The notes beneath the pieces are model-generated. The model did no database searches. It was not told where the DNA came from and was given only the letters and a program-made list of their open reading frames with translations. The position numbers and the translations under genes were made by a program. Positions 23,797-59,328 of a stretch of DNA of 64,000 bases are shown in pieces; the stretch's first letter is position 1, and every line of letters begins with the position of its first letter. Source of the stretch: Chlorokybus atmophyticus (lineage: Eukaryota; Plantae; Mesostigma and Chlorokybus algae); NCBI GenBank assembly GCA_009103225.1, contig RHPI01002910.1:299159-363158 (forward strand), written 5' to 3'.

Positions 23797-24007
23797 ACAG
23801 CTGATGCAAAGATGAAAGTATATGATGGGTAGAGTGTTTGTGCTCTACACGGTTCTCGCAATGCCGCTACCACTCACCGCATTAGTGCTTGTGCGCACTA
23901 TGTGGTGAAAGTGATAATGTTGCACGAGGATGTATCCAATTGCAAGCGGCACTTCTGATGTGCAGGATGCAACCACACTCACTTTAGCAAAGAGGGTGAC
24001 GCTGTGA

Positions 24008-24614
24008 GTCAAGAAGCCACTATTATAAGTAGTAATGTTTACACAGTTCTTTGCATGAGCGGAAAATGTGTTGCACTGTTAAGTGAGGTGAATGCGCAAG
24101 CAACATGTGGATGCTATACCCTGACTGATGCCAACAAGCACACCGCGACCAAACGCACCAAGCTCACACGAACGACAAGCACGGTGCACATGAGCATGCA
24201 CAGACTCTCACACGGTGAGGGGATTCTTGGTAACCACGACAGCGTGTTCGTAGTTCAAGTCGCTTCACAAGCTTCTAGCTTTCTCACTCACAGTGTCACC
24301 AGCTGATCTGGTGAACACCGCGACTACTTATACAAGTCAAATCATAACTGTTTAGAACACAAGCTAAAGGCCATATTAGGGCTTTTCCCATAAAAAACTC
24401 CCCTTTGATATTTAAACATAACATGTAATTGAATTCACAACTGAAACAGCTACGCGCGGTGCCTATGTAGGCTACGGTCATAAGCTAGTCCAAGGTCATG
24501 ATCTAGCCATTGGTCAGTGACGCGCGCGGTTTGGTATGCTGATAGTCCGAGCGAGGGTCTTGATGTAAGCATGCCCGATGCAGGCTGGCACACGAGGACA
24601 ATGGGCATGACAGC
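24008..24614 (-). repeat. Repeat A1 (5' terminal repeat of the retroelement)
   Basis: Direct copy of 13521-14110. It is not accompanied by a B copy on either side. Confidence 0.92.
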
Positions 24615-26322
24615 ATGCTGCTAACCGTGCATGCCACTATGCATGTGCATTTCCATTTCATATTGTTTGTACGTGTAACACTTTAATTGTACGCATAACC
24701 TTCTGTAATGCAACTTTAGCAACAAACGGTTCGTACTTACCGATACACACATTGTTTATATGCATCATGCCATGCGCATATGAACACCAAATGCCAGTTT
24801 GCGGACACTTAAGATTCTAGAAAATGGGCAAAAGCAAAGGTCGGAGCTTGAAAGACGGCGAGGTGAAAAGTTAGATCATGATATGCAAACCACAACGTTT
24901 TAATGATACCACTACTAAGCTTATTTGGCCGCCCCGTATGGTTTTCTATATTTCCCACTGGAAACTGCCTAAACAAACTGCATGCTGCGGGGAAAGTTAT
25001 TCGTCCCCTATCTGCGAGGTTGGTCTTCATGTGAGTGGGATCTTCTTGTAAGAGGATCGGAGGCCCCGCTTGCTGCGTAGAATGTTGTTGTACCGCAATG
25101 TAGGATGAGGTTAAGTGATACGTCTCTTGACACCACATTAATCACATGGCGTCAAGACAGAGTTGTGAATATCCTCTGCTGTGCAGGTGGTAATCTTGCT
25201 GTCTTACCACTTGCGTTGCTGGTTGTTGCCTGAGGGTCTAATGTAGTTATTATGGTTGTTAAGATACTTGTGTAAGCTGTTAGCTCTGTCTTGGCCCTTG
25301 CTTAAAAATAAGTCTTGTTTGCTTGCTGTGCGGCCTGCTTGGTGTGTCTGCTCGCACAATGCATTCTCTGAGCGTGCTTCGCGTAGCTCATATGTAAGTT
25401 ATAACACAGTTGTGATTTAAATGCCCATTCATATCATGATATGTGCACAATTTTCGAGATTTGACACCATCTTACCCTTGCAGGTTATTATTATATTGAT
25501 CATATGGGTTGCAATTAAATAGCTGCTATCTCACAAGTGCTCCGATTGAATATTCAAACATATGCTAACAATGATATGTATGCTCATTACATAAAGCCTT
25601 ATTACGCTAGGATACCAATGCTCATGGTCCCAATCGGTGAGTGCACAAGCATGAATGATAATTTTTGTACATGACATCCAATTCTTACATAACGCGAAAT
25701 TAACCAAAACAATTGCCAATATATACATTGATACATCAGATTCATCCGTTTAACTTTTAAATAAGAACCGCTTTAAGCTCCGCGCGACATGGCGGGCTTG
25801 AATACGTAGTACATATGCTTAATAATAATACGTATATAACATATATATATACATATAATGTACAAAATTTTCATCGTTGAAAGTATTGTGTTCTCTCTAT
25901 GTCATTCTGTTTCCGGTATTGACGTACATGAAATACTTGGCTTTACAAGCGTTACGGAGACCCAAAATTTCCTTGAACACTTGTGAGTCACAACTTGTAT
26001 TTGTAAGTCTTGAATTGTAGCTTCGCCTCGTTGTAACCTACATGCCTCCCTCATCACCCCCACGCTACCCAGTAAGGAAGGTACACGGTCTTCCATAGAG
26101 TGCGCTGATGGGGCCGCAGTTCAGACCTATCTGGAAGCTTTGTCCCAACCGTCCAAGCAAAGTGACATCTCATCCAATGCGCCTCATCCAACGGCTAACA
26201 CCGCACCACGCAGCGCCCACCGCATGCTCAAGCACTGGCACAACAACCTGAGCCAGCTCCATAAGCTTGTCCCACAGCCTCTGCGGCATTAGCGGAGTGT
26301 GCCACCCCAAGGCTGAGCCATC

Positions 26323-29990: not shown

Positions 29991-32035
29991 TTTGTTGTAT
30001 CCGCACACGCAGCTGTGGGGGGCTTGGGCGAGCCGTTGGCACTGTGCATTGCTTGCCGTTTTTACTTCACTTGCAAAGTTTGTGACCACTGCCACTTGTG
30101 ATGCTCTGCTTTTTGTGCGTATATATATGCATACAATATATATGCACAATCACGAAAGTAGAGTTTTGACAATGGCAGTAGTGCATGCAGCTCGTGCTAT
30201 TGTTAACAATGAAAATCGTATCAAAACATAAGTAGTCTATAGAGTAGCTATTAAAAACAATAAACAAGTATAAAGTATATATAGGCTTGTCAATAGCCTA
30301 AAAGCAAGACAGTAGCAAGATGGCAGCAAGGCTAGCAAGGCACATAGCAAGCACAATATAAGAATTATAGCAGAGGCAATGCAACGCTAAGGGTATGTGC
30401 ACTGCTTGAATGCGTGCAGATGGGGTGGAGGGGCATGAGGCAGCAATAGCAGGCAGTAGGCTAGCAACAACCAACCAACCAACCTGTTGCAAGCAGAGCT
30501 ATGGTTAGGATTGGTAGCAGAGGTACAGGGCACGACAAGAGTGCAACAATAGCATGCAATGGCAGCGGGGCGTAATTATACAAAGTACAGAGCACTGGAT
30601 TTGAATTGCAGAGTAAATGTGCAAGCCAACCACATCCCGCAATCAAACAAGGCAATACAAAAGCATTCCACGACAGCAAGCAATATGGGGGGGGGGGGAG
30701 GCGAAGTATGCAATGAGGGATAAATCATGCACATTACGTGCTTCATTGACAACCGGCAACCATCCATGTACGCAATGGTTGAGAGGCACCCTTAGCATAA
30801 TAGAGCTTGAGTGCAAAGTTGTGCGGCACACCTCAGTTACATACAAAACTCAGTTAAGGATATACGCAACCTTATATTCACGAAAGTTGTACATTCACAT
30901 GTCTATAAAGTGACAGTTGTAGCTGCATGCGCCTACAGCACTTGTGTTTATGCGTTTACAAATCCACATGCTAGCTATTGCCAAGTAAGTGGTTCTACTA
31001 CATTTGTGATGCATCACGTAACATTATTTATTCAGTAATTAAAGTTTAGATTGTTGATGGTATTTCATGTTGATGGCTTGAAGTGGTGTTGAATGTATTC
31101 GTGTGGAAAAGTAAAAATACTCAGATAGCATAGTATTCATGTACAATTGACATGTCGAGCAATTGTGAACTTGGCAATAAACCTTCATCAAGGAATTTCA
31201 ATATATCTTCATGTGTATACAATTATTGATACGAATAAGCGTAATTATGATTGATAAATCTAATACACTTTATTACTTTTGTGCTTTCAACGTTTGTATG
31301 GGAACAATTGTTTCCTGCCTTTATCACGATACCAATGGCATACGTTAGCAAGGAATGTCGTTAAATAAACATGAGCCCCATCTTTTTTGATGAGATGTTT
31401 GCAAGTCGGTAAACAACTTTATGCTTCAAATGAATGTCCAGGAACCAACCCTTGTGGCCCATTCATACGCCCACAAGCTATTAATGATACTATCAGCATT
31501 AATATCATACTGGTGCTATCAAACTTATTATGCTGGCAGTTTTACAATAATGATGACACAGAACATGTTCATTGGCACAATTAACAATCAACACTATAAC
31601 TACCGCTATTAATGCTATCATATGGATGCTTAATAGACAAGCCTCGAGTATACGAATCAGCACCACCCACACGGCAAACACCAAGTTGTAACTGCAAGTT
31701 AATGCGCCAGGGGGGAGGGGGGGGATTGCGCTTTTATTGACATGGTTGACGTAAACAACAGTCGAAAGTTGTTGCCGTGTCGGCTCGGTTACTATCCAAT
31801 GACGGAGCAACCCAATAATGAGCATCTCAAAGGTGGCGCAGTATTGCAATACCATATTATCATTGCTATAATTGACTTGTATTCTAGCACAAATGCATCA
31901 ACGATAAGTAATATTCATAATTACAACTTAAACGTAATATTAACAAATATTGCTATACATTGCAGCAGATTAATTATGTTATGTTAAGTATGAGTTTATT
32001 ATTTTGCATATATATATATATGATGTTATACATGC

Positions 32036-32069
<34 letters not shown>

Positions 32070-32193
32070 GATGTTATACATGCAAACATTTTGAAGTATT
32101 TGCGTATTTCACACTGTGTGACATAAGATTTCAAGGCCTTAAATTATGAGATGATGTAGGGCCGTGTATAAAAAACATCAGATTAAAAAGTAT

Positions 32194-32714
32194 TGTAGCA
32201 GCACCACCGTCGCCGGCGATGCCTCTTCAATCCTTTGCCCCAACACCCACACCGCCTGAGACTAGCCAAATTACACCGCCGGCAGCATGGCGCTGCAAGG
32301 GATAAAGATAGATGATGATCTCATCTATTAATGGGGCCTCTTGTATCAAGAGTACATACATATCATAGTGTATATATATCGCAATGATGTCTCTCAATAA
32401 TAAACTCATAACCTCCAATAAAGCTCCAATTTCAACGATAAAGTCCCCAGCGATAACATATTGATAATGTATCTAGCAACGAGGTACCGAACTTAATGTC
32501 TAACTATATGGATCGCATATATGAATGCGACACTTAATGCTTCAATATGCGGTTCTACACCCATTGAGACTTACCAAAGGTATGATGGAGCATTATACCT
32601 TTGGTAATACGGGCCTTTATAAGCAAAGAACCGTAGAAAGAAGTATAAACAAGTATTTACAATGAAATTTGTTGTTTTAATAGCAATAATACTCCTATTA
32701 TTGCTCCCGTTGTA
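32194..32714 (+). mobile_element. Solo LTR (521 bp), same family as 17643-18168
   Basis: TGTAGC...GTTGTA termini with a perfect 5-bp TSD AGTAT on both sides. Colinear with the reverse complement of 17643-18168 (cagcaccaccgtcgccgg.gatgcc.cttcaatcct; ctacacccattg.gactta; tagcaataatac.cctattattgctcccgtt). Confidence 0.88.
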
Positions 32715-33398
32715 AGTATAATTGCATGCACGCAGGTACACACAACAATACATTTAAGTAATGCCAACGTTGGCTTTATTTAAGTTGGTTAAACCGTGAG
32801 CATTTTGTTTACGCTAAACATCAAGCAAAAGAGACACATGTATATAGCGACATGTATATATTAACATAGAATGATTTTATAATAAACGTAAGTTATCAAT
32901 TGGTAAGTGATAGCTACGGTACCCCTTTTAACTCATTTGCGTGCAATGTAATGCAGCAAGAGTATAGTCATGTTGTCTTGGTACCAATGATATTGTGACG
33001 GTAATTTAATTTGAGCGGCACAATATCTTATTGCAAGTGAACATGAGTGTCAAGTAAATGTATGTAAGTTGATGCTCTTCACTTCAACTCTAAGTCTATC
33101 CCAGTGCAGCAACAATATATAAGTGCACGTAAATGGGTGCGCGTTAAAGTTAGGCACAAGTATCAAGTTGATTGCGCACACGTGTAAATATTTCTCACAT
33201 AAATAGCGACTACAGTCCCTCACTTTTTACACGATTGCATGTAAAGTCTACATTTGATGCAGCATTCAAAACGCCGGCGGGGAAGGGTTAACCCTCTTTC
33301 GCCCCCCCTTCATCAAGTGAAAAATGAGTTTTCAAAGTGCCTGCGATGGGTATGGTTAGATGTTGGGGCGCTGGGGGCGGAATGAGGGGGGGAGAGGG

Positions 33399-33488
33399 NN
33401 NNNNNNNNNNNNNNNNNNNNNNNNNNNNNNNNNNNNNNNNNNNNNNNNNNNNNNNNNNNNNNNNNNNNNNNNNNNNNNNNNNNNNNNN
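33399..33488. other. Assembly gap (N run) with G-rich flanks
   Basis: Seen directly in the sequence. Confidence 0.95.
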
Positions 33489-34949
33489 GGGGAGGGGGCT
33501 TCTGTTGGGGTAATTGCCATATATTAAGGCACACATGCTTTGTAATAGCACCGATGCAGATGCAAAAGCATAAGACACACACCTCCAATCATGTGCAAAA
33601 TTTCAAGCAATGAAGAATACAGAACGTTCGTGGTGTTTACTATGGCACGGCATCGCGTAAAGGCCGCCACTTGCTTCTTATCGCATGAGAAATCTTTAGC
33701 ACAACAATTGCATAATATGTACATACTAAGTGCTACTGTGCGCGGAAAGACCTAAGCGTTGTTTATAAACGCCTTTAGCATACATTTCTTGTATATGATA
33801 CACATTCCCATGTAACCAGTCAACTCATTCACAACATACCGGTACGTCATGCATGACCTATAGGGGTTTCGAACAAGGCCGCTTCATGGGATTCATCATG
33901 AATCATCATGTGCTTAACAACACGCAGCTACATGCCAAACAGCACACGGAACAGGTGCAGGACGTGTCCTGGATCCCGCGTTGCACTCAGCCCGTACGCT
34001 GGCGGTGTGCGGTCCCAACCGAACACGTGTTCACCGTGGCAATCAACCGCTGCTCCAACAAGCCGGCCGACCGGTTCGTAAACGCGCAATCGGTCTAGGC
34101 CTAGACCTGATCCCCCATGCCCTCATGCCTCCACCAGCCTGCACCAGCCCAAACCCAGGTCATGAATGTCCGGAGACTTCCCTGCTCGTCCGGTTCTCTC
34201 CCTTTGCATGGCCGATTCACGTGCCACGGTGGTGCACGCGCGCAATCAAGGGCGCGAATCCGGAAGGGCCGAACCCAAACAATGCCCTGCATTGTGCATG
34301 TTGTTGCGTGTGTGCATTTCGCGCCCTCAACTCTAGAGAACAGTTCTCTCCTGCGGTTAAGAACAGGACACTTAACCAGTTAACCTGAACCGGGCTATAA
34401 TCGCCATTCAGAATTCTACTGCCATCCTCCCATGGTACTGAGGATATCGCGGAGAAAGTTTTGGTTAGTTAACTGCTACCCGCCAAAACCCTAGCGGACG
34501 CAAGTGGCATGATGTGACAGGCGTGGCCAGGGGTGTGTGGCGGCGGCGACAGCAGTGGCGGGAGGGTTGAGGCGGGCGGCGAGAGCCATGACGTGACAGC
34601 CGTCGCCGTTCAGGCTGTCTTGTCAAGCGCTTTTCGGGGCGGCGGTGGTTTGCGATTTGGTATGGCGGTGCTGTCAGGCTCGGAGGTTTCTCCCCACGTT
34701 AAGCAGGTAAATCTTGGCACGGAGACGAAGCTTGCTGCTTACGATAGGATGTTGTTTCGTGGGTAATTGTTGTGGCTAGCCCTGCGTGTATGCTGCTTGC
34801 CGTTCAGCGTCTACGTTGCCGCACGCTTGCCTGCCGCCGAGCTGCGTAATCTGCTACGTACTACCAGTAGGCAGAAGGTGCATGCGTTTGGTATGTGGAT
34901 GGCATGTAAGCGGAGCTGTAGGCCTTGTAGATAGTGCTGGCATAAGCTA

Positions 34950-49431: not shown

Positions 49432-50619
49432 GGCGCCCTCCTCCCGGCGGACCCTTCGCCGCCGCTGCTGCCTACACTCAGCCTGGCGTAGGCGCTGCCA
49501 TAGGCGCCACCGCCAGCGCCGTTCCCCGCGATGCTGCTAGGGCCTACGTGCTCAAAAAAGGTCACATGCCATATGGCTGTTTTTGACAGACCAAAGGTGT
49601 AGCACACCACTTCTAGTCTGTCCACCCCACTGACAACGACGATCATTCCATTACAACAGCAGCGCACTCCCCCTTGCGCTGGGCTGCCGGCATTTGTGTG
49701 TTGGGCTGCCTCCCTTGCGGCGAGCATGCGCACAAGAGTGCAAGGTCTGGAGGGTTTGGAACCCTCCTCCCAGAGATGCAACTTGATGCGTGATGGGTAT
49801 GAGCTCTGCTGCACCGGCTAGCAGTTTCAAGCTGGCAAAGCAATCGATAGCCCGTCAACTACCGATGGTGTGCCTGTGATACCTTTCTGTCCTCGATCAG
49901 CGCATGCAGGTCTCTCGGCCCAACCGACGGGATGAATGGCACGCGCCCTGCATTGGTCACAAGGAACCTAGTAAGAGCAAGTTCCCGGGACACACTCAGG
50001 GGCTGAAAATATGTCAGCCCTGATCCGTGTGCATGCACGTGTCATGGCAATGCGGCATTGCCAATGCCGAATCGCTGATCGTGAAGTTGGTTTGGCGTGT
50101 GTTCTCTCAGCTGATGGTTGACCTGGCTATGGGCTTGTTTGTTATTATTGCAAAAGGGTCTGACGTGCCAGAAGCAGGATGCTTGATGCACAGAGCAGTA
50201 CAGTAGTTAACGTGCACGCGCTGGCAAGCTTTGTGAAACTTGGCAGCCACCCTGCCAGCTTGACTTCATCCGGTCCTTCTTGTCACTCCGTCCGGTCCGT
50301 TCCTCCGTCGTTTACCAGACCGTGTGGTCGTCCCAAAACCCGAACCGGCTGCGATGCCGCCTTTGACCGGCTCAGCACGTAAAACGGCTCAACCGTGGAT
50401 GGTGTTTTGGGACAAGAGCATGCCTCGCTTTCCGCTGTCGTGTCCGCGATGCTTGATCAATCAAACGGTCTACGCCCGTTGTCATATCCGCCGCCGGAGT
50501 AACCTCGCCGTATTTTTAAGGACTTAAATCTCAGGGAACCGATGATCCGTCCCTGCTAAACAGCCGCGGGCATAAGAACAGTCTTAGCCGCGAAGGGAAT
50601 GTTAAGATGTGTATGCGTC

Positions 50620-50698
50620 AGTTCCCACCTGAATGTGCCCACAACGAGAAGAAAACACGGATTTATGTATATGTGTATATGTCGTATACACATGTGTG

Positions 50699-50731
<33 letters not shown>

Positions 50732-50956
50732 TTTTTAGTCATAAATATATATATATATTTTTATTTATGTATGTATATATATGAGTGTACCAATACCTTA
50801 CTTTAATGTATCCATTTGTATATCTACACATGATGCGTGTTTGTACATATGCATGTATCTGTAGCATGTATGCTATCAGCATGTGCGTGTGTGTGTGTGC
50901 ATACGTATCATAATTATCTATATATACATGTATGCATATATGTGCATATATGCATA

Positions 50957-50988
<32 letters not shown>

Positions 50989-50995
50989 CTTATTT
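50620..50995. repeat. Compound (TA)n/(CA)n/(TG)n low-complexity tract
   Basis: Seen directly in the sequence. Confidence 0.85.
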
Positions 50996-53900
50996 TTCCA
51001 TGCTTTGCTCATTTTTTTCAACATGATTATGAAAATGTCTATATACGTTTAAGACTATTCAATTCTATACCGTCAATAGAACCACCCCGCCACAAGACTA
51101 TAAACACTGGTAACAGACCGTATTCTTATACAGCGGGGGTAGACTTTACATCGTATGTATAATATTACGTGTACGACTAATAGTGTCTCATGCACACATG
51201 TAAACTTGGAGGATAAGAAGCAGCAGAGACCACATTATCAAGTTTTCACGAGGCAACTTGCTCATTATGGGCGCTTGTGTGCACACGTGCAGGTGAGCCC
51301 TGGTCGTTGCTGCTGTTGTTGACTTAAAGAGGTGTTGCTGCGGGGCCTAGCATATCCTTGTTGGTTAAACTATTGTGTTTACTGCTCTTTGCTATTGCAT
51401 GCTTCATGTTTGCTAATTGATAGTGAGTTGATTAGTTGTACTTTACTTGTAGCTGCCTGCTTTGATAACGCTAACTGGCAATGCTTGTGAGCTTGACCAC
51501 CTGCTGCCCGCCTGCCCGTGTTGGCTTGTACCCTTGGCTAATGTTTACTTGGTTGTGAGTGTTCACATTGCACCTAGCCCATGCTTCGCTTGTGGTCATG
51601 CTGCGTCAGTCAGATGCACAGTCATGCGTACATACTATGGTTTCGCGACATCGTCGTATTGCGCGGCTCAAAAGATACTGGTAGTTTATCATCATTTGTA
51701 GAAACCTTGCAAAGATGCATGCATACGAGAGTATTTAAATGTGTACCTCATGTACACTTGGGGATGTAAAGTTTACATCCTTAATGTTAATGTGATGCAT
51801 AAGAGTAGCCATCAACATTTTAGGAAATGCCTGGCTCGACTCAAAATGAAGATTGCGCGGCACTTCGTTATGTTGTTGATAAATATTACATGAAGTTCCA
51901 TAAACATGAAGTACATGTTAAACAGTACAATCAAACAGTGCTGTAACATACCACAAATGCTGTACGGGCAGCTTATTCATGATAATAATCTCATTACGCC
52001 AAAACAATTATTAATCGATGAGTAATGAAAAAATTCATTGAAGGATTAAAACATGCAAGCAATTAGCTTGTGTAAACCTAGTTCCGCTGCAATTTGCATT
52101 GCACATCATCAAATGCGTTGTTAATTGGTTTAACACACCTACTATCGCGGTCTTATAATAAGCATGGGAGGAACGCAAGTGCACAAGCTATTTTTCAAAC
52201 CATAAAGTATTTTGATATCAACCAACTCGTATATTACAGCGCCCATCATTGGTGCAGAACGCTCAGTGTATGACATACATTGTTAGGCATGAATTAAACA
52301 GCCCCAAAAGGGCTCACTTCAAAACCTTTCTTGAAAAAGCTTGCTTCAAGGTGAACCGCTCGCAACTCCAAGCGACCGTTTACACGCAGGTTAAGGTACA
52401 CCTTAGCGCATGTCATTATCATTAATGGGAGTCGCAACTTAAAGGGTGCAAAAACATTGTTGGATTGGCCCTACCAATCAACGTCCTTCGCTTATAAGTT
52501 GTGTGTTGATATTTGGTCTACAATCTGGCGGCACCACCTCACACATTTGTGGTTAAAATAGCCAATGTTCCCACCAAGTCGCGCCTTTTAGGCGGGAAGT
52601 GTTTAACAATCATAACCCCACCCTGCGCTATTAAAGATTTACATGATGGTAGCCCATCCACATGCACCCCAACAAGCGTATTAACAATAACATAATAGTT
52701 GTAATATTTGTTGCAGTGTAATGCTTAAGGGAGGTACCTGAGTGACTGCCTCCTTGCATACTACTAGCAAATTAAGCTATAACAGCATGCCTTATAGCTT
52801 AGCCTCGTAGCTAATATGATGTTAGCTACGCGAGGTTAAGTTATGATCAGCAAGCATTGCCTGTTTACCAAGCAATAGTATTGCATCATTTAGTGCTTGG
52901 ATGTAATTCTACCATATCCAAGGAGAATAAGCTACACCAGCAGCAGCAAATATAAAGCGACCAACCCATAACCTGCTTTAATGGATAGAGATCCATTCAT
53001 TCGACAAGCGCCCGAATCGTCTTAGCTCCGATTCTTCAACCTCGCATTAAGAGCATTCAGCCGCTTTGCTCGTGTATCAACGGTAAAGATGTAATAGCCG
53101 AATGTCGGCGGACCATTCTCCAAAAATTGTCATTGTAAACCGATCATAAGCGTAGAGAATAATGTAAAAAGAGCTAAGTGCACGCTACATTTGATATAAC
53201 GGCGATCGACATTGTTAGTTGCTGTTATAGCCCATGCACGTAAAGTTGTGAACAACATGCCCTTAATACAGGGGATGTGTATAAAGGGCTTATATAATAC
53301 TATTTAACTAACCCAACTCGTATGTAGGCCGTTAGTGCCATCGCTGCCGCCACTACTCGGTGCCGTCTCGCACCGCCAAAGCCGTTGCCATCACCAGAGG
53401 CCCCTCACCGCCCTCGTTCTAATGTCAGCGTAAGAAAAAGGGGTGATACTTCCCCCTTTCCCCTACCCAAACACCACCGCCACACACGACACCCACACGT
53501 CTTATGTCGATAGTTAGAATAAAATATCCTCACCTATGGCGGTCGTTACCATTTATTGCGCCGCCGTGCGATTGGTATAGAGTTGAGACACGTGTCTCAA
53601 TTTGTTGTCCATCTCAAATGGACATAATTTGAACATAGTATCGTGGATACCCATCATGAGAAGGCCATCATGTAGCTTGATTGGCTGTTAACCAATTGCG
53701 ACCCTTCGTTAAATCCAAAGTTAGACCATGAAAACCTTTTTGAAGGTAGGTGGTATCACTATATTATAAGCACGCCCGCTGCAACAAACATCACTCGCTT
53801 GTGCAACAATTGCGCAAGCCCACTGCCGCACCACCTGGCCTGCTTCATGGTTATACTCGGTTGTGTGTCCGCTGACATTGCACGGCACTATTGTTGACTC

Positions 53901-54854
53901 CGATTGAATGACTCTGGTGTCTTACTGACTGATGACTGACTCTGGTGTTGTACTGCATGCGCAAGACAAAAAAAGCTAGCGGAAGCTGAAGAGCACTTGT
54001 CAGTGTACCCCACAATTGCATGCTTGCAGTTCAAAAGACTTCGGGCCGATTCCATCACAATATCACATGCCCGCTCTCAAAATCCATGCCTGGTCACTCC
54101 TCGAATGCTGCGAAGGTGGTTACACATTGGCCGTCCTTAGCCTGTTCCCTGCCTGCCTTTTCCTGCCCGCTCCTGCCCAGCGTGCTTGGGTCGTTGTGCT
54201 ATTACTACTAGTTGTATTCTCTGTCCTTGCGCTAATTTCAACCCCCCCAAATCTATGTTATAATGTCATGGCCCGCGTACATACAATGCGCGTGGCATAT
54301 GCTTATGCATAGTCACGCTCACCATCCCACAATCATACCACTCACATTTTACACTACCACGTAGTTCACCACCGGGCAACTCTATCCAATCTACCTGCTG
54401 TGTATAAAAGATGGTATGCCAGTAAGTGTGTCTTGCCTGCACACCTTGTGTACACTCCATTGCTTTACAAACTCTTTTGGCAAATTCTGCAAAATTGATT
54501 GTGTACACATGTTGGCAAAAAGCTACACTACATGCTCGCAGCGAACAACATTAGGTATACTACAGAGACGGATTGGCATGCAACACCAATGTCCGCTTTG
54601 CTAAGCGATGTGCTATGACCGGCAGAATGGCAGTTGGTTCTTATTGCGCACTTCGCTACATTTGAGCCTAATGCGCGAGCTTCAGACCCTGCAAGGAAAG
54701 AATTAATTAAGAAAATTGCCCACAGATTGCAACATGAGCCAACATTGCTTGATGGCACACACAGCATGTACAACTACTTTGCCAACATGGCAACCACGCA
54801 TATATGCTTACCCCACTGCAATGCATGTGAAGTTGTTGTGATGCACTGCGTCCT

Positions 54855-57800
54855 TCACTCCCCGTTTGCGTGTGCAACCTTTGTGGCATGTTCCAAGGCA
54901 GGCTCAACAATGACTGTGGCTGGCGCTGTTGCCAGCTTCTCACCAACAGCCGTCTTGACAATGGCAGGTTCGTCCACAACAGAAAAGTCCAACTCCTCAC
55001 TGGTAGGCGTGTGCATCTCAGGCGATGACCCCACGGCAGCTGCATCCAGAGGAGCGTCCAAAGGATCTGAAGCGCGCTCAGCAGCAACACTTTCCGGCGT
55101 AGCAGAAAGCATGGGTGCAATTTGTGGCATGTCGGCATGCATCTCAGTTGATGACCCCACAGCAGCTGCATCCAGAGAATCGTCCAATGCAGGTATAGTT
55201 GTACCCCATGGCGTGGACTCATGCGCCTCAGAAGCCGTTGTTGTGTCCGCAGCATCAGCATAGCTCTCGGGTGCTGCCAGCTCAGCTGCGGGTAGATCGA
55301 CTGTTGATGAAGGCGTTAACTCAACTTCGGGCTCTGCTGCTGCTTCAGGTGCCCCTGCCCCTGCTGCTGCTGCTGCTTTAGATTCAGGCAGCTCAGATGC
55401 AGCAGGCATGGGCTTGAATACGCGCTCGGGTTCAGTCGATGGGCGGTCCCGCAGCTTGAAAGTGCCGTCTGGCAGCTCTTCGTACCCTTCCAGCAGCTCC
55501 CAAAGGGTGCCATCAGGGAGCTCATACGTGCCATCTGGGAGCTTGCGCCCCCCAGGCGGCAGCCTGAAGCGGTTGTCCGGCAAGTCGATGGCGCCGGCGG
55601 GCAGCACAAACACCTTCTCGGTTGATGAGGCCTTAGGGAACGGAATGTAGTCCGGCACAACAATCTTCAGGTCAGAGCCAGGCTTGAGCTTGAAAGTGCC
55701 GTCCGTGGAAACCGCGACATCAGCAGGCAGCCTGAACACGGTGCCGTCGCGCAGGATGCACGTGCCATCCTTGCCCATGCTGGTGCCAGCTGGCATGCAG
55801 TAGTCGCCATTGGGCAGTTGCACGGAGCCCTCTGGCAGATACAGCGGCGCAGCCGGTGACGCAACTGCAGGCTTGCCAAAACAACACCCACCGCCCTTCT
55901 TCTTGGGCTTCGTTTGCACGGGCGGCAGCTTGGGCGTCGCATACGACACAGGTGCGGGTGGGACCATCTTCTTCGTGCCTGCAATCTTCCCGCTCTGCTG
56001 CAGCACTTCCGTGGCACTGGGGTCGGTTGAGAGCATGAACGTGCCATCGGGCATCTCAGTGGATCCGTCAGGGACATAGAAGATGGAGCCATCGGGGATC
56101 CAAAATGTGCCATTGGGGAGCTTGATTGCGCCCTCCGGAAGCTTGAAGCGAGAGCCGGCCGGAAGCGAGAACGCCCCCATCGGAAGCTTGTAGTGGCCGT
56201 CCTCACTCTCCTCTGTGCCCACGGGGAAGCGGAACACGTTGCCATTGGGCAGGGTGTACACGTTGTCGGCGGTCTTGACGGCGCCCTTGGGCAGCAGGAA
56301 TGTGCCGTCCGGCAGCATCCGGAAGCCTTCTGGCAGCTTGAACGAGGTCCCGTGTGGCAGCTGTATCCGCGTCTTGCCCGTCGCCTTAACCGGTGAAGCC
56401 TCAACCCTTCCAGCAGCAGCAATGGCCTTGGCCTGCGCCTCCTCCAGGGTGGGATAACCAAGCTCTGCCCCAACTGGAAGCTGAAAGCCGCCCTCACCAA
56501 CCTCTTGAGTGCCCTCTGGTAGTGAAAACAATGTACCATCGGGTGTCGTGTATATGTTGTCCACCACTTTGGCAGCGCCATCCGGCATCATGAACTTGCC
56601 ATCCGGTTTGAGGTGCTCCTCAAGCAACATGTCCTTCTCGCCGGGAGGCAGCAGCAGGAAGTTGCCGTCCGGCAGCGCTCTGCATGACATGGGCAAGGTC
56701 CACACGGTCCCGTCCGGCAGCTTGTACTGCCGCCGGCCAAGGCGCACAGTCTCCGCGGGGAGTGCAAACGTGTCATCGGTCAGGACGATGGACCCCTTAG
56801 GCAGCTTGACTGTCTCGTCCGCATCCTCCTCCACAGGCGCCTCGCCCAGCTGCAGCTTCTTCTTCTTCCTGCGCTTCTCTTTTGCCGGAAGGCGAAAGAT
56901 CTCTCCGCTTGGAAGCAGGAACGACCCGTCAGCGTTCTGAATAGTGCCTTCTGGAAGCGCGATAGACCCGTCCGGCATTCTCTCCACGCCTTCGGGCAAT
57001 GCCATGCTGATGCTTGCTGTTGAGGACGTGCGTCTGGGGACGTCACCTTGCATGGAGCCCACATCATCCGCGATCGGCGCGATCGGCGCGATTGGCGCTA
57101 GCTCAACGGGGAGCGGCAATGGGGAGTCTTCAATGGGCACTCCTCCGTTGGCGGCCGAGCGCCTTTTCTTCTTTTGCGCTGGTGCTGCGGCTCGAAGGAT
57201 ACCACCTTCAAGCAAGAAAGTGCCATCCTTCCTTATGCGCGCATTGATCGGCAGCTCCACAATGGTGCCATCCGACAACTCAAAAGACCCGTTGCGCAGT
57301 CTGACTGTCCCACTGGGCAACTGATACAGCCCGCTTGGCATCCTCATTGTGCCAGCTGGCAAGGTGGAGAGGTTGCCATTGCCATCATCATACACACATT
57401 GTGGCAGCTGGAAGGATCCATCTGGGAGCGCAATGGTGCCGTTTGGGAACTGCACCGAGCCGTCCGGGAGAGTCTTGATGCCCGAAGGCAGCTTCAGTGC
57501 ACCATCAGGCAGCTGGACGACATCCTCGGGCAGGGCCAAAAGCACCTCTGCGGGAATTTCCGACAGGAATGCCGGAAGTACAGCTGCAACCTTGGAGTTG
57601 GCATTGCTGGAAGTCCGCCTAACAGGTTTGCGCAAGGCTTTTTCTGTTGACGAGGGCGTGCGAGTCAGTGCAGGGCTGGTGACCGCGGCAGCTGCTTTGC
57701 TGGCATTTTGGGTAGTTTGCCTTCTGCGCCGGCCGTAGGTTTCTGCATGGGCAAAAGGCCACAGCGGGTCTTGCGGGATAGCTTCATCCGGTAGAGAGAA

Positions 57801-59328
57801 GCAACACGCCGGCAGCTCACTGCAACCTACAGGCAGCTTAAACCATGACCCGTCCGGGATGCTGTAAAGCCCGCCACCACGCCGGATAGTGCCCTCCGGA
57901 AATTTATAGTTGGCGTCCTCCATGCGCGTGCAGCCTTCTGGTAGGTCCACCAGAGAGCCGTCCGGCAGCGCGAATCCCACCTTTGGCAACCGCACGTTGC
58001 CATCTGGAAGGCGGGTGTAGCCCTGTGGAAGCTCTTCGCGTGTCTCCTGCACAGTCATCCCTCACGTCACATGCTTGCACTACTACCTGGTTGATGTGAC
58101 TGTATTGAACACCAACCTTCAACAACATCAGCTTGGCAGTCTTTACAGAGCAGAGTATGAGACTTAAACAGCATGACAACATCTGATGCCGTGGTGCTGT
58201 ACCTGTGCAATCTGAAACAGGCGATCGCGCGTAGTGTTGCGAGTGAACGACATGTACTCTGCATTGAACTCCTTGTACGATACTAGTCCATCTCCGTTCT
58301 CATCCAGCAACATCTATCATGAGCCAATCATCAATCCGCATGCACACCATAGGCCCGCAGATGAATGGCATCACTTTCCTCGCATCACATCCTTCTTTAA
58401 TAATTGATCTGTCAATCAGCTTACCTGGAAAGCCTGAAACTGCCGTGAACCAGCTTCCGGTGCAAGTTTTTTCGTGAGCATCTGTCCAAGCAATAGTGGT
58501 TCACGAGCAATGACTTTGTGATAGGCGTGGACACGACAGAAGTTCTGCACAACTAGCATATGGTACGATAGAAGACTGCAAACAAAGCATTGCACTGCTG
58601 CGAGCAACGCTTCACTCCCACACGGATCATCTGTCAATGCAAAAATCCTGGACCAGCTGCAACCCAAGCAGGAGTCCACCAAAAAGTCAACAAGCAGTGG
58701 TGCAACAGAAGACTGCATGCATAGCAACGCTCTGCTGCAGAACACTTCACTAGGACACATCACATCTGTCACGCATCTAACGGCAATGCAAGTTGTTACT
58801 GTGAAATCTGTTCATTACGCAACACTCACCCGCAGCTCTGCTGAATTGAGATAACCATCATTGTCCTTGTCAAATTGTTTGAACAGCTCCAACAGCCGCA
58901 CCTGCATTGATGCATGTATTGATGACAAGCCAGCATCCATTCGGCAGTTGCACGTGGTAACCATAAGCTGGCACAGCATCAAAGTGTACAGAACGAGCAC
59001 CAGATGCACGCACAGCATTGCACTAAATGCAAACCCTTGCACCGTCAACCATTCATTGGGCCACGTTCGAGTGGAACAACTTGTTGCAATGTAGGCAATG
59101 AGCACCAGCTGAACAACAGCTTCGTGCACAAACCCTGCTGGGCCATAGAGCCGAGCGACAATGTGCTCGATCGTAGCGATTGCTCACAATTGCAAGATTG
59201 CAGCATGCATGCAACCTACAATACGGAAAGCACTGCACAAGTACCTGCTTGGTCTCACAATAGTCCCTGACTTTGGCCAGAACCTCCTTAGCCACCGTCA
59301 CGCTGTCGTCCACCTCATACTCGCCCAT
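54855..59328 (-). CDS. Large EF-hand protein with multiple LPxG/LPDG repeat modules and an acidic Ala-rich tail (~1180 aa predicted; further 3' exons possible)
   Basis: 5' exons give MGEYEVDDSVTVAKEVLAKVRDYCETKQ / VRLLELFKQFDKDNDGYLNSAELR (EF loop) / MLTKKLAPEAGSRQFQAFQ / MLLDENGDGLVSYKEFNAE (EF loop). These splice to a 1067-codon open exon (58058-54855) full of LPEG/LPDG/LPNG repeats. Confidence 0.85.

Follow-up and report, generated by a model that had tools for sequence, protein, structure and literature searches.

Arrays of a seven-residue LPxG/PDG repeat joined to an EF-hand pair in a Chlorokybus protein, a possible calcium-responsive scaffold

We analyzed a stretch of 64,000 nucleotides (nt) from contig RHPI01002910.1 (positions 299,159 to 363,158, forward strand) of the alga Chlorokybus atmophyticus, called the window in the following. 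On its minus strand lies a gene of five exons which joins a pair of EF-hands to seven blocks of a seven-residue repeat with the motif LPxG, often LPDG. The protein is best read as the 1171-amino-acid (aa) cytoplasmic product of one intact nuclear gene. We suggest, with about an even chance of being right, that it is a Ca2+-responsive cytoplasmic scaffold or adaptor whose arrays form beta-hairpin ribbons with PDG turns.

The gene itself is already known from public annotation, where it stands as a hypothetical protein. What appears to be new, judged from the sequences compared, is a 40-residue supermodule built from the heptads and its restriction to Chlorokybus and Mesostigma, and further the fusion to EF-hands and the recurrence of PDG-heptad arrays beside signalling-adaptor domains in scattered eukaryotes. 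Beta-hairpin repeats such as MORN and the G-box of CPAP are few and poorly understood, and they are important at cell cortices and centrioles. The Chlorokybus array might offer a third and simpler design, in which every seven residues supply a single strand and a single PDG turn. This design is conserved in two anciently diverged basal streptophyte algae, and in the Chlorokybus copy it is attached to a predicted Ca2+ sensor.

Gene structure and the EF-hand pair

The public protein P0001 (jgi/Chlat1/8194, Chrsp76S07631 in EukProt; Chlorokybus atmophyticus, 1171 aa) is 100% identical to the product of the gene. We placed its exons on the window by tblastn and read the exon ends from the sequence. 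The spliced translation of the five exons gives P0001 exactly, and the introns of 343, 348, 111 and 156 nt are all bordered by GT-AG. The last exon corresponds to an open reading frame (ORF) of 1067 aa (54855-58058, minus strand). Its acceptor, TGTGCAG, lies 12 nt inside this ORF as listed from the ATG at 58058. The EF-hand part and the repeat part are thus joined by a phase-0, in-frame intron of 156 nt (58047-58202), and this join is also found in the public JGI model. A preliminary description of this DNA, made from the sequence alone, had placed an EF-hand pair upstream of one 3.2-kb repeat exon within a single gene, and the translation of the exons bears this out. The N-terminus of P0001 has features of neither a signal peptide nor a transit peptide. 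N-myristoylation was considered as well and rejected, as the Glu after Gly2 is disallowed under the rule of PROSITE PS00008.

Both EF-hand loops, DKDNDGYLNSAE and DENGDGLVSYKE, are canonical with ligands at positions 1, 3, 5 and 12, glycine at position 6 and a hydrophobic residue at position 8; in DKDNDGYLNSAE the canonical residues were read at each of positions 1, 3, 5, 6, 8 and 12. The region matches Pfam EF-hand_7 with 38.8 bits (cut-off 30) and EF-hand_1 with 37.2 bits (cut-off 25.4), and the pair aligns with calmodulin lobes or chains in the PDB at E 1e-10. The sequence of the N-terminus is that of two canonical EF-hands paired as in a calmodulin lobe, and Ca2+ binding is predicted. No other long protein among those scanned (644-2049 aa) was found to share this EF-hand N-terminus. 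Within reach of the databases searched, the combination of EF-hands and LPxG array appears to be unique to Chlorokybus.

The heptad repeat and the 40-residue supermodule

The 1067-aa ORF contains 49 motifs of the type [LFIVMT]-P-x-G where 3.3 are expected by composition, and their spacing is 7, 8, 14 or 15 residues nearly throughout. Counted as hP.G the motifs likewise number 49, and PDG occurs 19 times in the repeat protein. The heptad consensus is L-P-[D/E/N]-G-[T/S]-[hydrophobic]-x. Proline and glycine are present in all 49 heptads, leucine in 36, D/E/N in 30 (D in 18) and T/S in 28 (T in 18), followed by I/V/F-x. Two residues before each Leu there is usually F, Y, V or I, and the residue directly before it is K, Q or R.

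The heptads are organized into the supermodule LPEGxxxLPDGxFxLPxGxxxxxDxxYxLPDGTxFxLPxG of 40 residues. A phmmer self-search with a one-copy query finds 10-11 full copies, and a ten-copy module profile likewise recovers 10-11. In a six-frame scan of the window the module is confined to one frame of one gene (55485-58034). The copies group into seven blocks (Table 1). The net charge of a block lies between -1 and -6, and glycine makes up 12-13% of the block residues. The module and its seven-residue periodicity are therefore as the preliminary description had them. That description had further counted about eight blocks; the arrangement in blocks separated by linkers was correctly seen, but the blocks are seven.

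At the DNA level little of this regularity is left. Tandem Repeats Finder reports no array over the repeat-coding part, and the direct-repeat families show 60-78% identity across about 33 nt. Modules share 36% of their amino acids and 48% of their nucleotides, every synonymous codon is in use for the conserved Leu, Pro and Gly, and at identical residues the third-position identity between modules is 0.39. Since the synonymous codons are scrambled and the DNA copies have diverged, the earlier argument that the retained L-P-x-G reflects selection on the protein is sound. By these measures the heptad repeats are old and under protein-level selection.

Relatives of the repeat

We searched 1.84 billion representative proteins in an exhaustive HMMER pass and obtained 406 relatives at E up to 1e-3, 47 at 1e-10 and 4 at 1e-30. 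The best match is the protein Mv16269 of Mesostigma viride (P0011/P0157) with 257 bits in 8 stretches. It comes in isoforms of 2134-3120 aa, aligns over nearly the whole repeat region and gives 7 full-length matches to the module profile. Mv16269 has the same LPxG supermodule as the Chlorokybus protein; it is, however, three times longer, about 26% identical over the long alignment, and carries neither an EF-hand nor a Pfam match nor the polybasic Cys motif described below. Among 170 fetched proteins, the strict core aromatic-x-LPDGT-x-F-x-LPxG is found only in the Chlorokybus and Mesostigma proteins.

Plainer PDG heptads occur beside two PDZ domains in P0002. In other relatives the PDG heptads are accompanied by five LIM domains (P0003), by five C2 domains with a conserved array alternating with each C2 (P0004), by Dpy-30 in a snail protein (P0005), by seven SH3 domains (P0014) or by a set of SH3, Ank, FYVE, C2 and PH domains (P0017). 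Further PDG-heptad proteins carry CAP-Gly, synaptobrevin or ankyrin, and Paulinella and beetle proteins are also among the heptad matches. For P0003, P0004, P0005, P0014 and P0017 we found no protein name or description.

Block 2 is where the matches of most heptad proteins from bacteria and animals fall. Among these proteins are many bacterial ones of 700-900 aa with heptads of the LxDGxxx type, some with the domain ABC2_membrane_3. The bacterial X-X-X-Leu-X-X-Gly proteins (YhgE/Pip-type ABC-2; the accession of the NCBIfam model for this heptad is presumably TIGR03057) share the LxDGxxx heptad periodicity. In contrast to the Chlorokybus protein, the bacterial heptad proteins are membrane or surface proteins, and most are without the proline and the supermodule. 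The bacterial likeness to block 2 may be convergent. True LPDGS arrays are present in LGFP, transmembrane and PIN-like proteins of Nocardia.

Relation to named families

The preliminary description did not recognize the repeat as a named family. This holds for the single blocks but not for the whole protein. Pfam DUF6799 (PF20606) matches the ORF with 50.3 bits and P0001 with 48.9 bits, well above the gathering cut-off of 26.8 bits, and PF20606 is already carried by the public record of P0001 and by most heptad-array relatives. Single blocks score 22.4, 19.5 and 19.1 bits (the last value for block 2) or do not match, and none reaches the cut-off. Only positions 25-62 of the 63 positions of the profile are ever matched, and no domain-level match covers most of the profile. 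As no block alone passes, the kinship lies only in the generic xDGxxxx heptad, and the score is a sum of partial matches. While the xDGxxxx periodicity is common to both, the DUF6799 model has neither the 40-residue supermodule nor the aromatic-x-LPDGT-x-F-x-LPxG core, and the closest relative, Mv16269, scores no DUF6799 match. DUF6799 is a Pfam family without known function to which the repeat is only loosely related. A match to a repeat family of known function was not found. Our literature search retrieved no paper naming DUF6799; queries for an LPDGS, LPDGT or PDG repeat returned irrelevant peptide lists only, and a query for Chlorokybus together with EF-hand returned nothing relevant. In NCBIfam the whole protein matches no family at E up to 1.

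Some other candidates were discarded. An RTX beta-roll was rejected with the period being 7 and not 9, GGxGxDxUx being absent and a Pfam match lacking. Matches to Cuticle_1, TGS, PilY2, Cys_Knot_tox and other Pfam families lie below the cut-offs and were taken as noise.

Two known families resemble the arrays in their construction. MORN proteins (junctophilin, MORN1) form beta-hairpin arrays and elongated sheets and are cortical or membrane-cytoskeleton scaffolds. The MORN repeat has 23 residues with GxG and YEGEW motifs, and the MORN1 structure is reported to be similar to the G-box (PMC7725318). The Chlorokybus protein, however, has no GxG/YEGEW motifs and no Pfam MORN match at E up to 1. 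With the G-box of CPAP/CENPJ/SAS-4 it shares a short-strand repeat with P-D-G turns, a resemblance of construction only. The G-box repeat is longer than the seven-residue period of the Chlorokybus arrays. Both faces of the G-box are solvent-exposed, whereas the Chlorokybus strands would have one hydrophobic face. In the TCP/G-box domain of CPAP, about 20 antiparallel strands form a single-layer sheet that stands free; its type I turns are often PDG, and the domain binds a proline-rich STIL peptide (PMC3776556). By the Pfam model Tcp10_C, the whole ORF is unmatched at E up to 1 and one block reaches 14.3 bits against a cut-off of 36; weak Tcp10_C matches are seen in 8 of 73 heptad-array relatives. 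A search of the PDB with the seven-block profile retrieves no CPAP chain. In our view the protein belongs neither to the MORN nor to the CPAP G-box family, and the likeness is one of analogous construction.

Predicted structure of the arrays

We modelled block 5 with AlphaFold2, using the other six blocks as alignment. The model reaches a predicted local distance difference test (pLDDT) score of 72.9 and has a strand of 2-3 residues about every 7 residues. The full-length model has a pLDDT of 41, with 60-84 in the block cores and less than 35 in the linkers and the tail, and is too poor to show how the EF-hands are arranged relative to the array. The preliminary description had proposed stacked beta-hairpins with PDG turns. 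Predicted strands every seven residues, joined by P-D/x-G turns, agree with this in a model of moderate confidence, whereas for the stacking as a meander we infer the topology from the periodicity, the turn chemistry and the analogy to known repeats. From the residue preferences, the hydrophobic heptad positions 6 and 1 would share one face of the strand, and T/S and basic residues the other. One clearly hydrophobic face suggests packing on a partner, on another array or on a membrane and not a fully solvated sheet.

In the Foldseek search of the PDB with block 5 nothing is significant; the best E is 0.019 for choline-binding repeats, followed by clostridial CROP repeats. Against the G-box structure 4ld3 the block 5 model, itself of moderate confidence, gives a Foldseek E of 0.14 and a template modelling (TM) score of 0.18, and 4ld3 is not among the VIA-align rows with Z of at least 2. 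For block 5, VIA-align reaches at best a Z of 2.3 when searching widely and of 2.5 on the Foldseek top 1000, and the ESM Atlas returned no usable match to block 5. Sequence searches of the PDB with the ORF and with the seven-block profile gave chance-level matches only (E 0.1 or worse). Matches of this kind to designed armadillo proteins, a HicA-like protein, alphavirus capsids and NHL/lactonase propellers were dismissed.

Linkers between the blocks

The linkers are 15-80 residues long and either basic or rich in Ser/Thr/Ala/Pro. They hold the runs RRRR, KKKRR and KRRKKKK, that is, three basic runs of at least four residues, as well as two RRTSS motifs and one KPKKKGGGCCFGKP motif. The latter, a polybasic stretch followed by Cys-Cys, is by its sequence a candidate site for S-acylation and membrane contact. 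The PDZ-bearing relative P0002 (L001:65-3805) has a comparable element in the middle of its array, KKKKSFCGKLCACSCCSCFPCCKK, in which polybasic residues precede a Cys cluster. Such an element may be an anchor to the membrane by S-acylation which the two proteins have in common. An in-frame microsatellite in a linker (57069-57098; 9-nt unit, 3.3 copies) encodes APIAPIAPIA.

Proposed function and alternative explanations

We suggest that the protein could work in the following way. Each heptad would contribute one short beta-strand and a P-D-G turn, so that an array would form a narrow and semi-rigid hairpin meander or ribbon. The array could use its amphipathic surface for packing on a partner, on another array or on a membrane. 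This binding, or the conformation of the protein, would depend on Ca2+ through the EF-hand pair. Finally, the polybasic linkers with their RRxS/T sites and the KKKGGGCC element might provide phospho-regulated contacts with the membrane or the cytoskeleton. The partner domains of the related arrays are adaptor modules of the cortex, the membrane and the cytoskeleton and point, indirectly, to a scaffold. The preliminary description had likewise spoken of a scaffold regulated by Ca2+ and had named the cytoskeleton, the flagellar root or the cortex as its place. SH3, PDZ, LIM, C2, PH/FYVE, CAP-Gly and Dpy-30 as partners lend such a role indirect support, but nothing specific speaks for the flagellar root.

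Several points weigh against this proposal. The alignment behind the block model consists of only seven paralogous blocks, the model of the whole protein is poor with its pLDDT of 41, and the block model is unlike any solved structure, so that the meander topology is only inferred. The proteins with partner domains may share no more than a convergent heptad. As Mv16269 is without EF-hands and none of the other scanned proteins of 644-2049 aa shares the EF-hand N-terminus, the link to Ca2+ may be a recent fusion, or it may hang on the splicing of a single 156-nt intron. Finally, nuclear localization signals would explain the basic runs equally well.

This last point leads to a quite unlikely alternative, in which KKKRR and KRRKKKK direct the protein to the nucleus and the arrays scaffold partners at the chromatin or the nuclear envelope. 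The three basic linker runs would fit, as would the acidic tail, which is also seen in some chromatin proteins. The eukaryotic relatives, however, carry C2, PH, FYVE, PDZ and SH3 and not nuclear domains, and Cys-Cys next to polybasic residues would rather suggest an anchor to the membrane. It is also improbable, in our estimate, that the EF-hand exons and the repeat exon belong to two genes or transcripts fused by annotation, and that the repeat protein starts at the ATG at 58058 and has no Ca2+ sensor. This ATG is only four codons upstream of the proposed acceptor, Mv16269 has no EF-hand, and the N-terminus is not shared by the other proteins of 644-2049 aa. Yet the four introns are of the GT-AG type, exon 4 ends in phase 0 in frame with the long ORF, and the JGI model joins the parts likewise; reading through the intron would end the EF-hand product after 12 arbitrary codons.

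Other explanations concern the arrays themselves. P-x-G repeats are found in elastin, flagelliform silk and glutenin, and the arrays might be elastomeric or mostly disordered beta-turn spirals which act as an entropic spring or tether with Ca2+-responsive ends. A P-x-G turn every seven residues in blocks with 12-13% glycine, predicted strands of only 2-3 residues, the low full-length pLDDT and the absence of a compact fold match (the best Z is 2.5, although 7-8 is usual even for models without a match) are in line with this. We nevertheless regard it as rather unlikely: elastomeric disorder would not usually give block cores with a pLDDT of 73-84, the alternation of hydrophobic and polar residues speaks for a defined packing, as do the conserved aromatics and the 40-residue module, and Chlorokybus and Mesostigma have both kept this module. 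Very unlikely, to our mind, are arrays that bind Ca2+ themselves through Asp-lined turns, similar to RTX or thrombospondin type 3 (TSP3) repeats, and that fold only with Ca2+ as a buffer or switch. In favour, 30 of 49 heptads have D/E/N at position 3, every block is net negative, and the arrays have EF-hands as fusion partners in Chlorokybus and C2 domains in P0004. On the other hand, no pattern of the GGxGxDxUx or DxDxDG type is present, seven residues are too short for a known Ca2+-binding roll, RTX and TSP3 are unmatched at E up to 1, and in the CPAP G-box the Asp of PDG is a turn residue and not a metal site (PMC3776556). That the supermodules are blades of an NHL or SMP-30/gluconolactonase-type beta-propeller with long loops is scarcely credible. 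The 40 residues of the module equal the length of one blade, and there are sub-threshold matches to SGL (15.9 bits), NHL (14.4 bits) and propeller lactonases; but all of these are below the cut-offs, and the modules stand in groups of 1-3 split by basic linkers of 15-80 residues. Neither the block nor the full-length model contains a propeller (predicted TM scores 0.29 and 0.47), and the fold searches found none.

Returning to the scaffold of hairpin ribbons, a bolder version can be formulated, which we put forward as a doubtful speculation. The LPxG supermodule might be a fold of its own, a free-standing beta-hairpin ribbon with the shortest period known (7 residues) and amphipathic, in contrast to the fully solvated G-box. 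It would be confined to the basal streptophyte lineage of Mesostigma and Chlorokybus, and in Chlorokybus it would be wired to the EF-hands as a Ca2+-switched scaffold of the cortex or membrane skeleton; the arrays fused to SH3, PDZ, LIM, C2 or Dpy-30 in other eukaryotes would then belong to the same, hitherto unrecognized class of scaffold elements or be convergent copies. A structure of one block would give the first structural footing to DUF6799 and to the arrays in SH3, PDZ, LIM and C2 fusions.

Positions of features and minor observations

Table 1. Exons, repeat blocks and further elements of the gene (positions in the window)
Feature	Position	Strand	Description
Exon 1	59245..59328	-	Start codon and residues 1-28; acidic N-terminus; tblastn, GT-AG
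Exon 2	58830..58901	-	EF-hand 1, loop DKDNDGYLNSAE; Pfam EF-hand_1 37.2 bits, P0001 residues 31-58
Exon 3	58425..58481	-	Linker helix between the EF-hands, MLTKKLAPEAGSRQFQAFQ; within EF-hand_7 match, P0001 residues 30-91
Exon 4	58203..58313	-	EF-hand 2, loop DENGDGLVSYKE, and exit helix; phase-0 end
Exon 5	54855..58046	-	3192 nt including stop codon; seven LPxG/PDG heptad blocks, linkers, acidic tail
Block 1	57783..58037	-	ORF residues 8-92; about 2 supermodules
Block 2	57183..57536	-	ORF residues 175-292; about 3 supermodules, most regular heptads
Block 3	56874..57011	-	ORF residues 350-395; one supermodule between PRRTSST and the KRRKKKK run
Block 4	56454..56816	-	ORF residues 415-535; about 3 supermodules; core pLDDT 73-84 in the full-length model
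Block 5	56019..56381	-	ORF residues 560-680; longest regular array; modelled separately
Polybasic and Cys-Cys motif	55869..55910	-	KPKKKGGGCCFGKP; about ORF residues 717-730, linker of blocks 5/6
Block 6	55659..55850	-	ORF residues 737-800; best single DUF6799 stretch, 22.4 bits (below the cut-off of 26.8)
Block 7	55443..55616	-	ORF residues 815-872; final array
C-terminal tail	54858..55442	-	ORF residues 873-1067 (195 aa); acidic, Ala/Pro/Ser/Thr-rich, net charge -28

The C-terminal tail is predicted to be disordered (pLDDT about 30), and a Pfam scan of it gave no match. At its start, an in-frame CTG/CAG-type microsatellite of 14.7 copies (55334-55377) encodes a poly-Ala/Gly run. The tail further contains a direct duplication of 50 nt with 90% identity (55012-55061 and 55138-55187; family D7), the copies being 126 nt or 42 codons apart. 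It encodes LDAAAVGSS(T/P)EMH twice. While the heptads are ancient, this duplication is young, the only such repeat in the gene.

The GC content of the window is 38-44% at 24000-26000, 30000-34000 and 50000-54000, compared with 50-60% elsewhere, and these low-GC stretches are probably intergenic or repeat-rich intervals.

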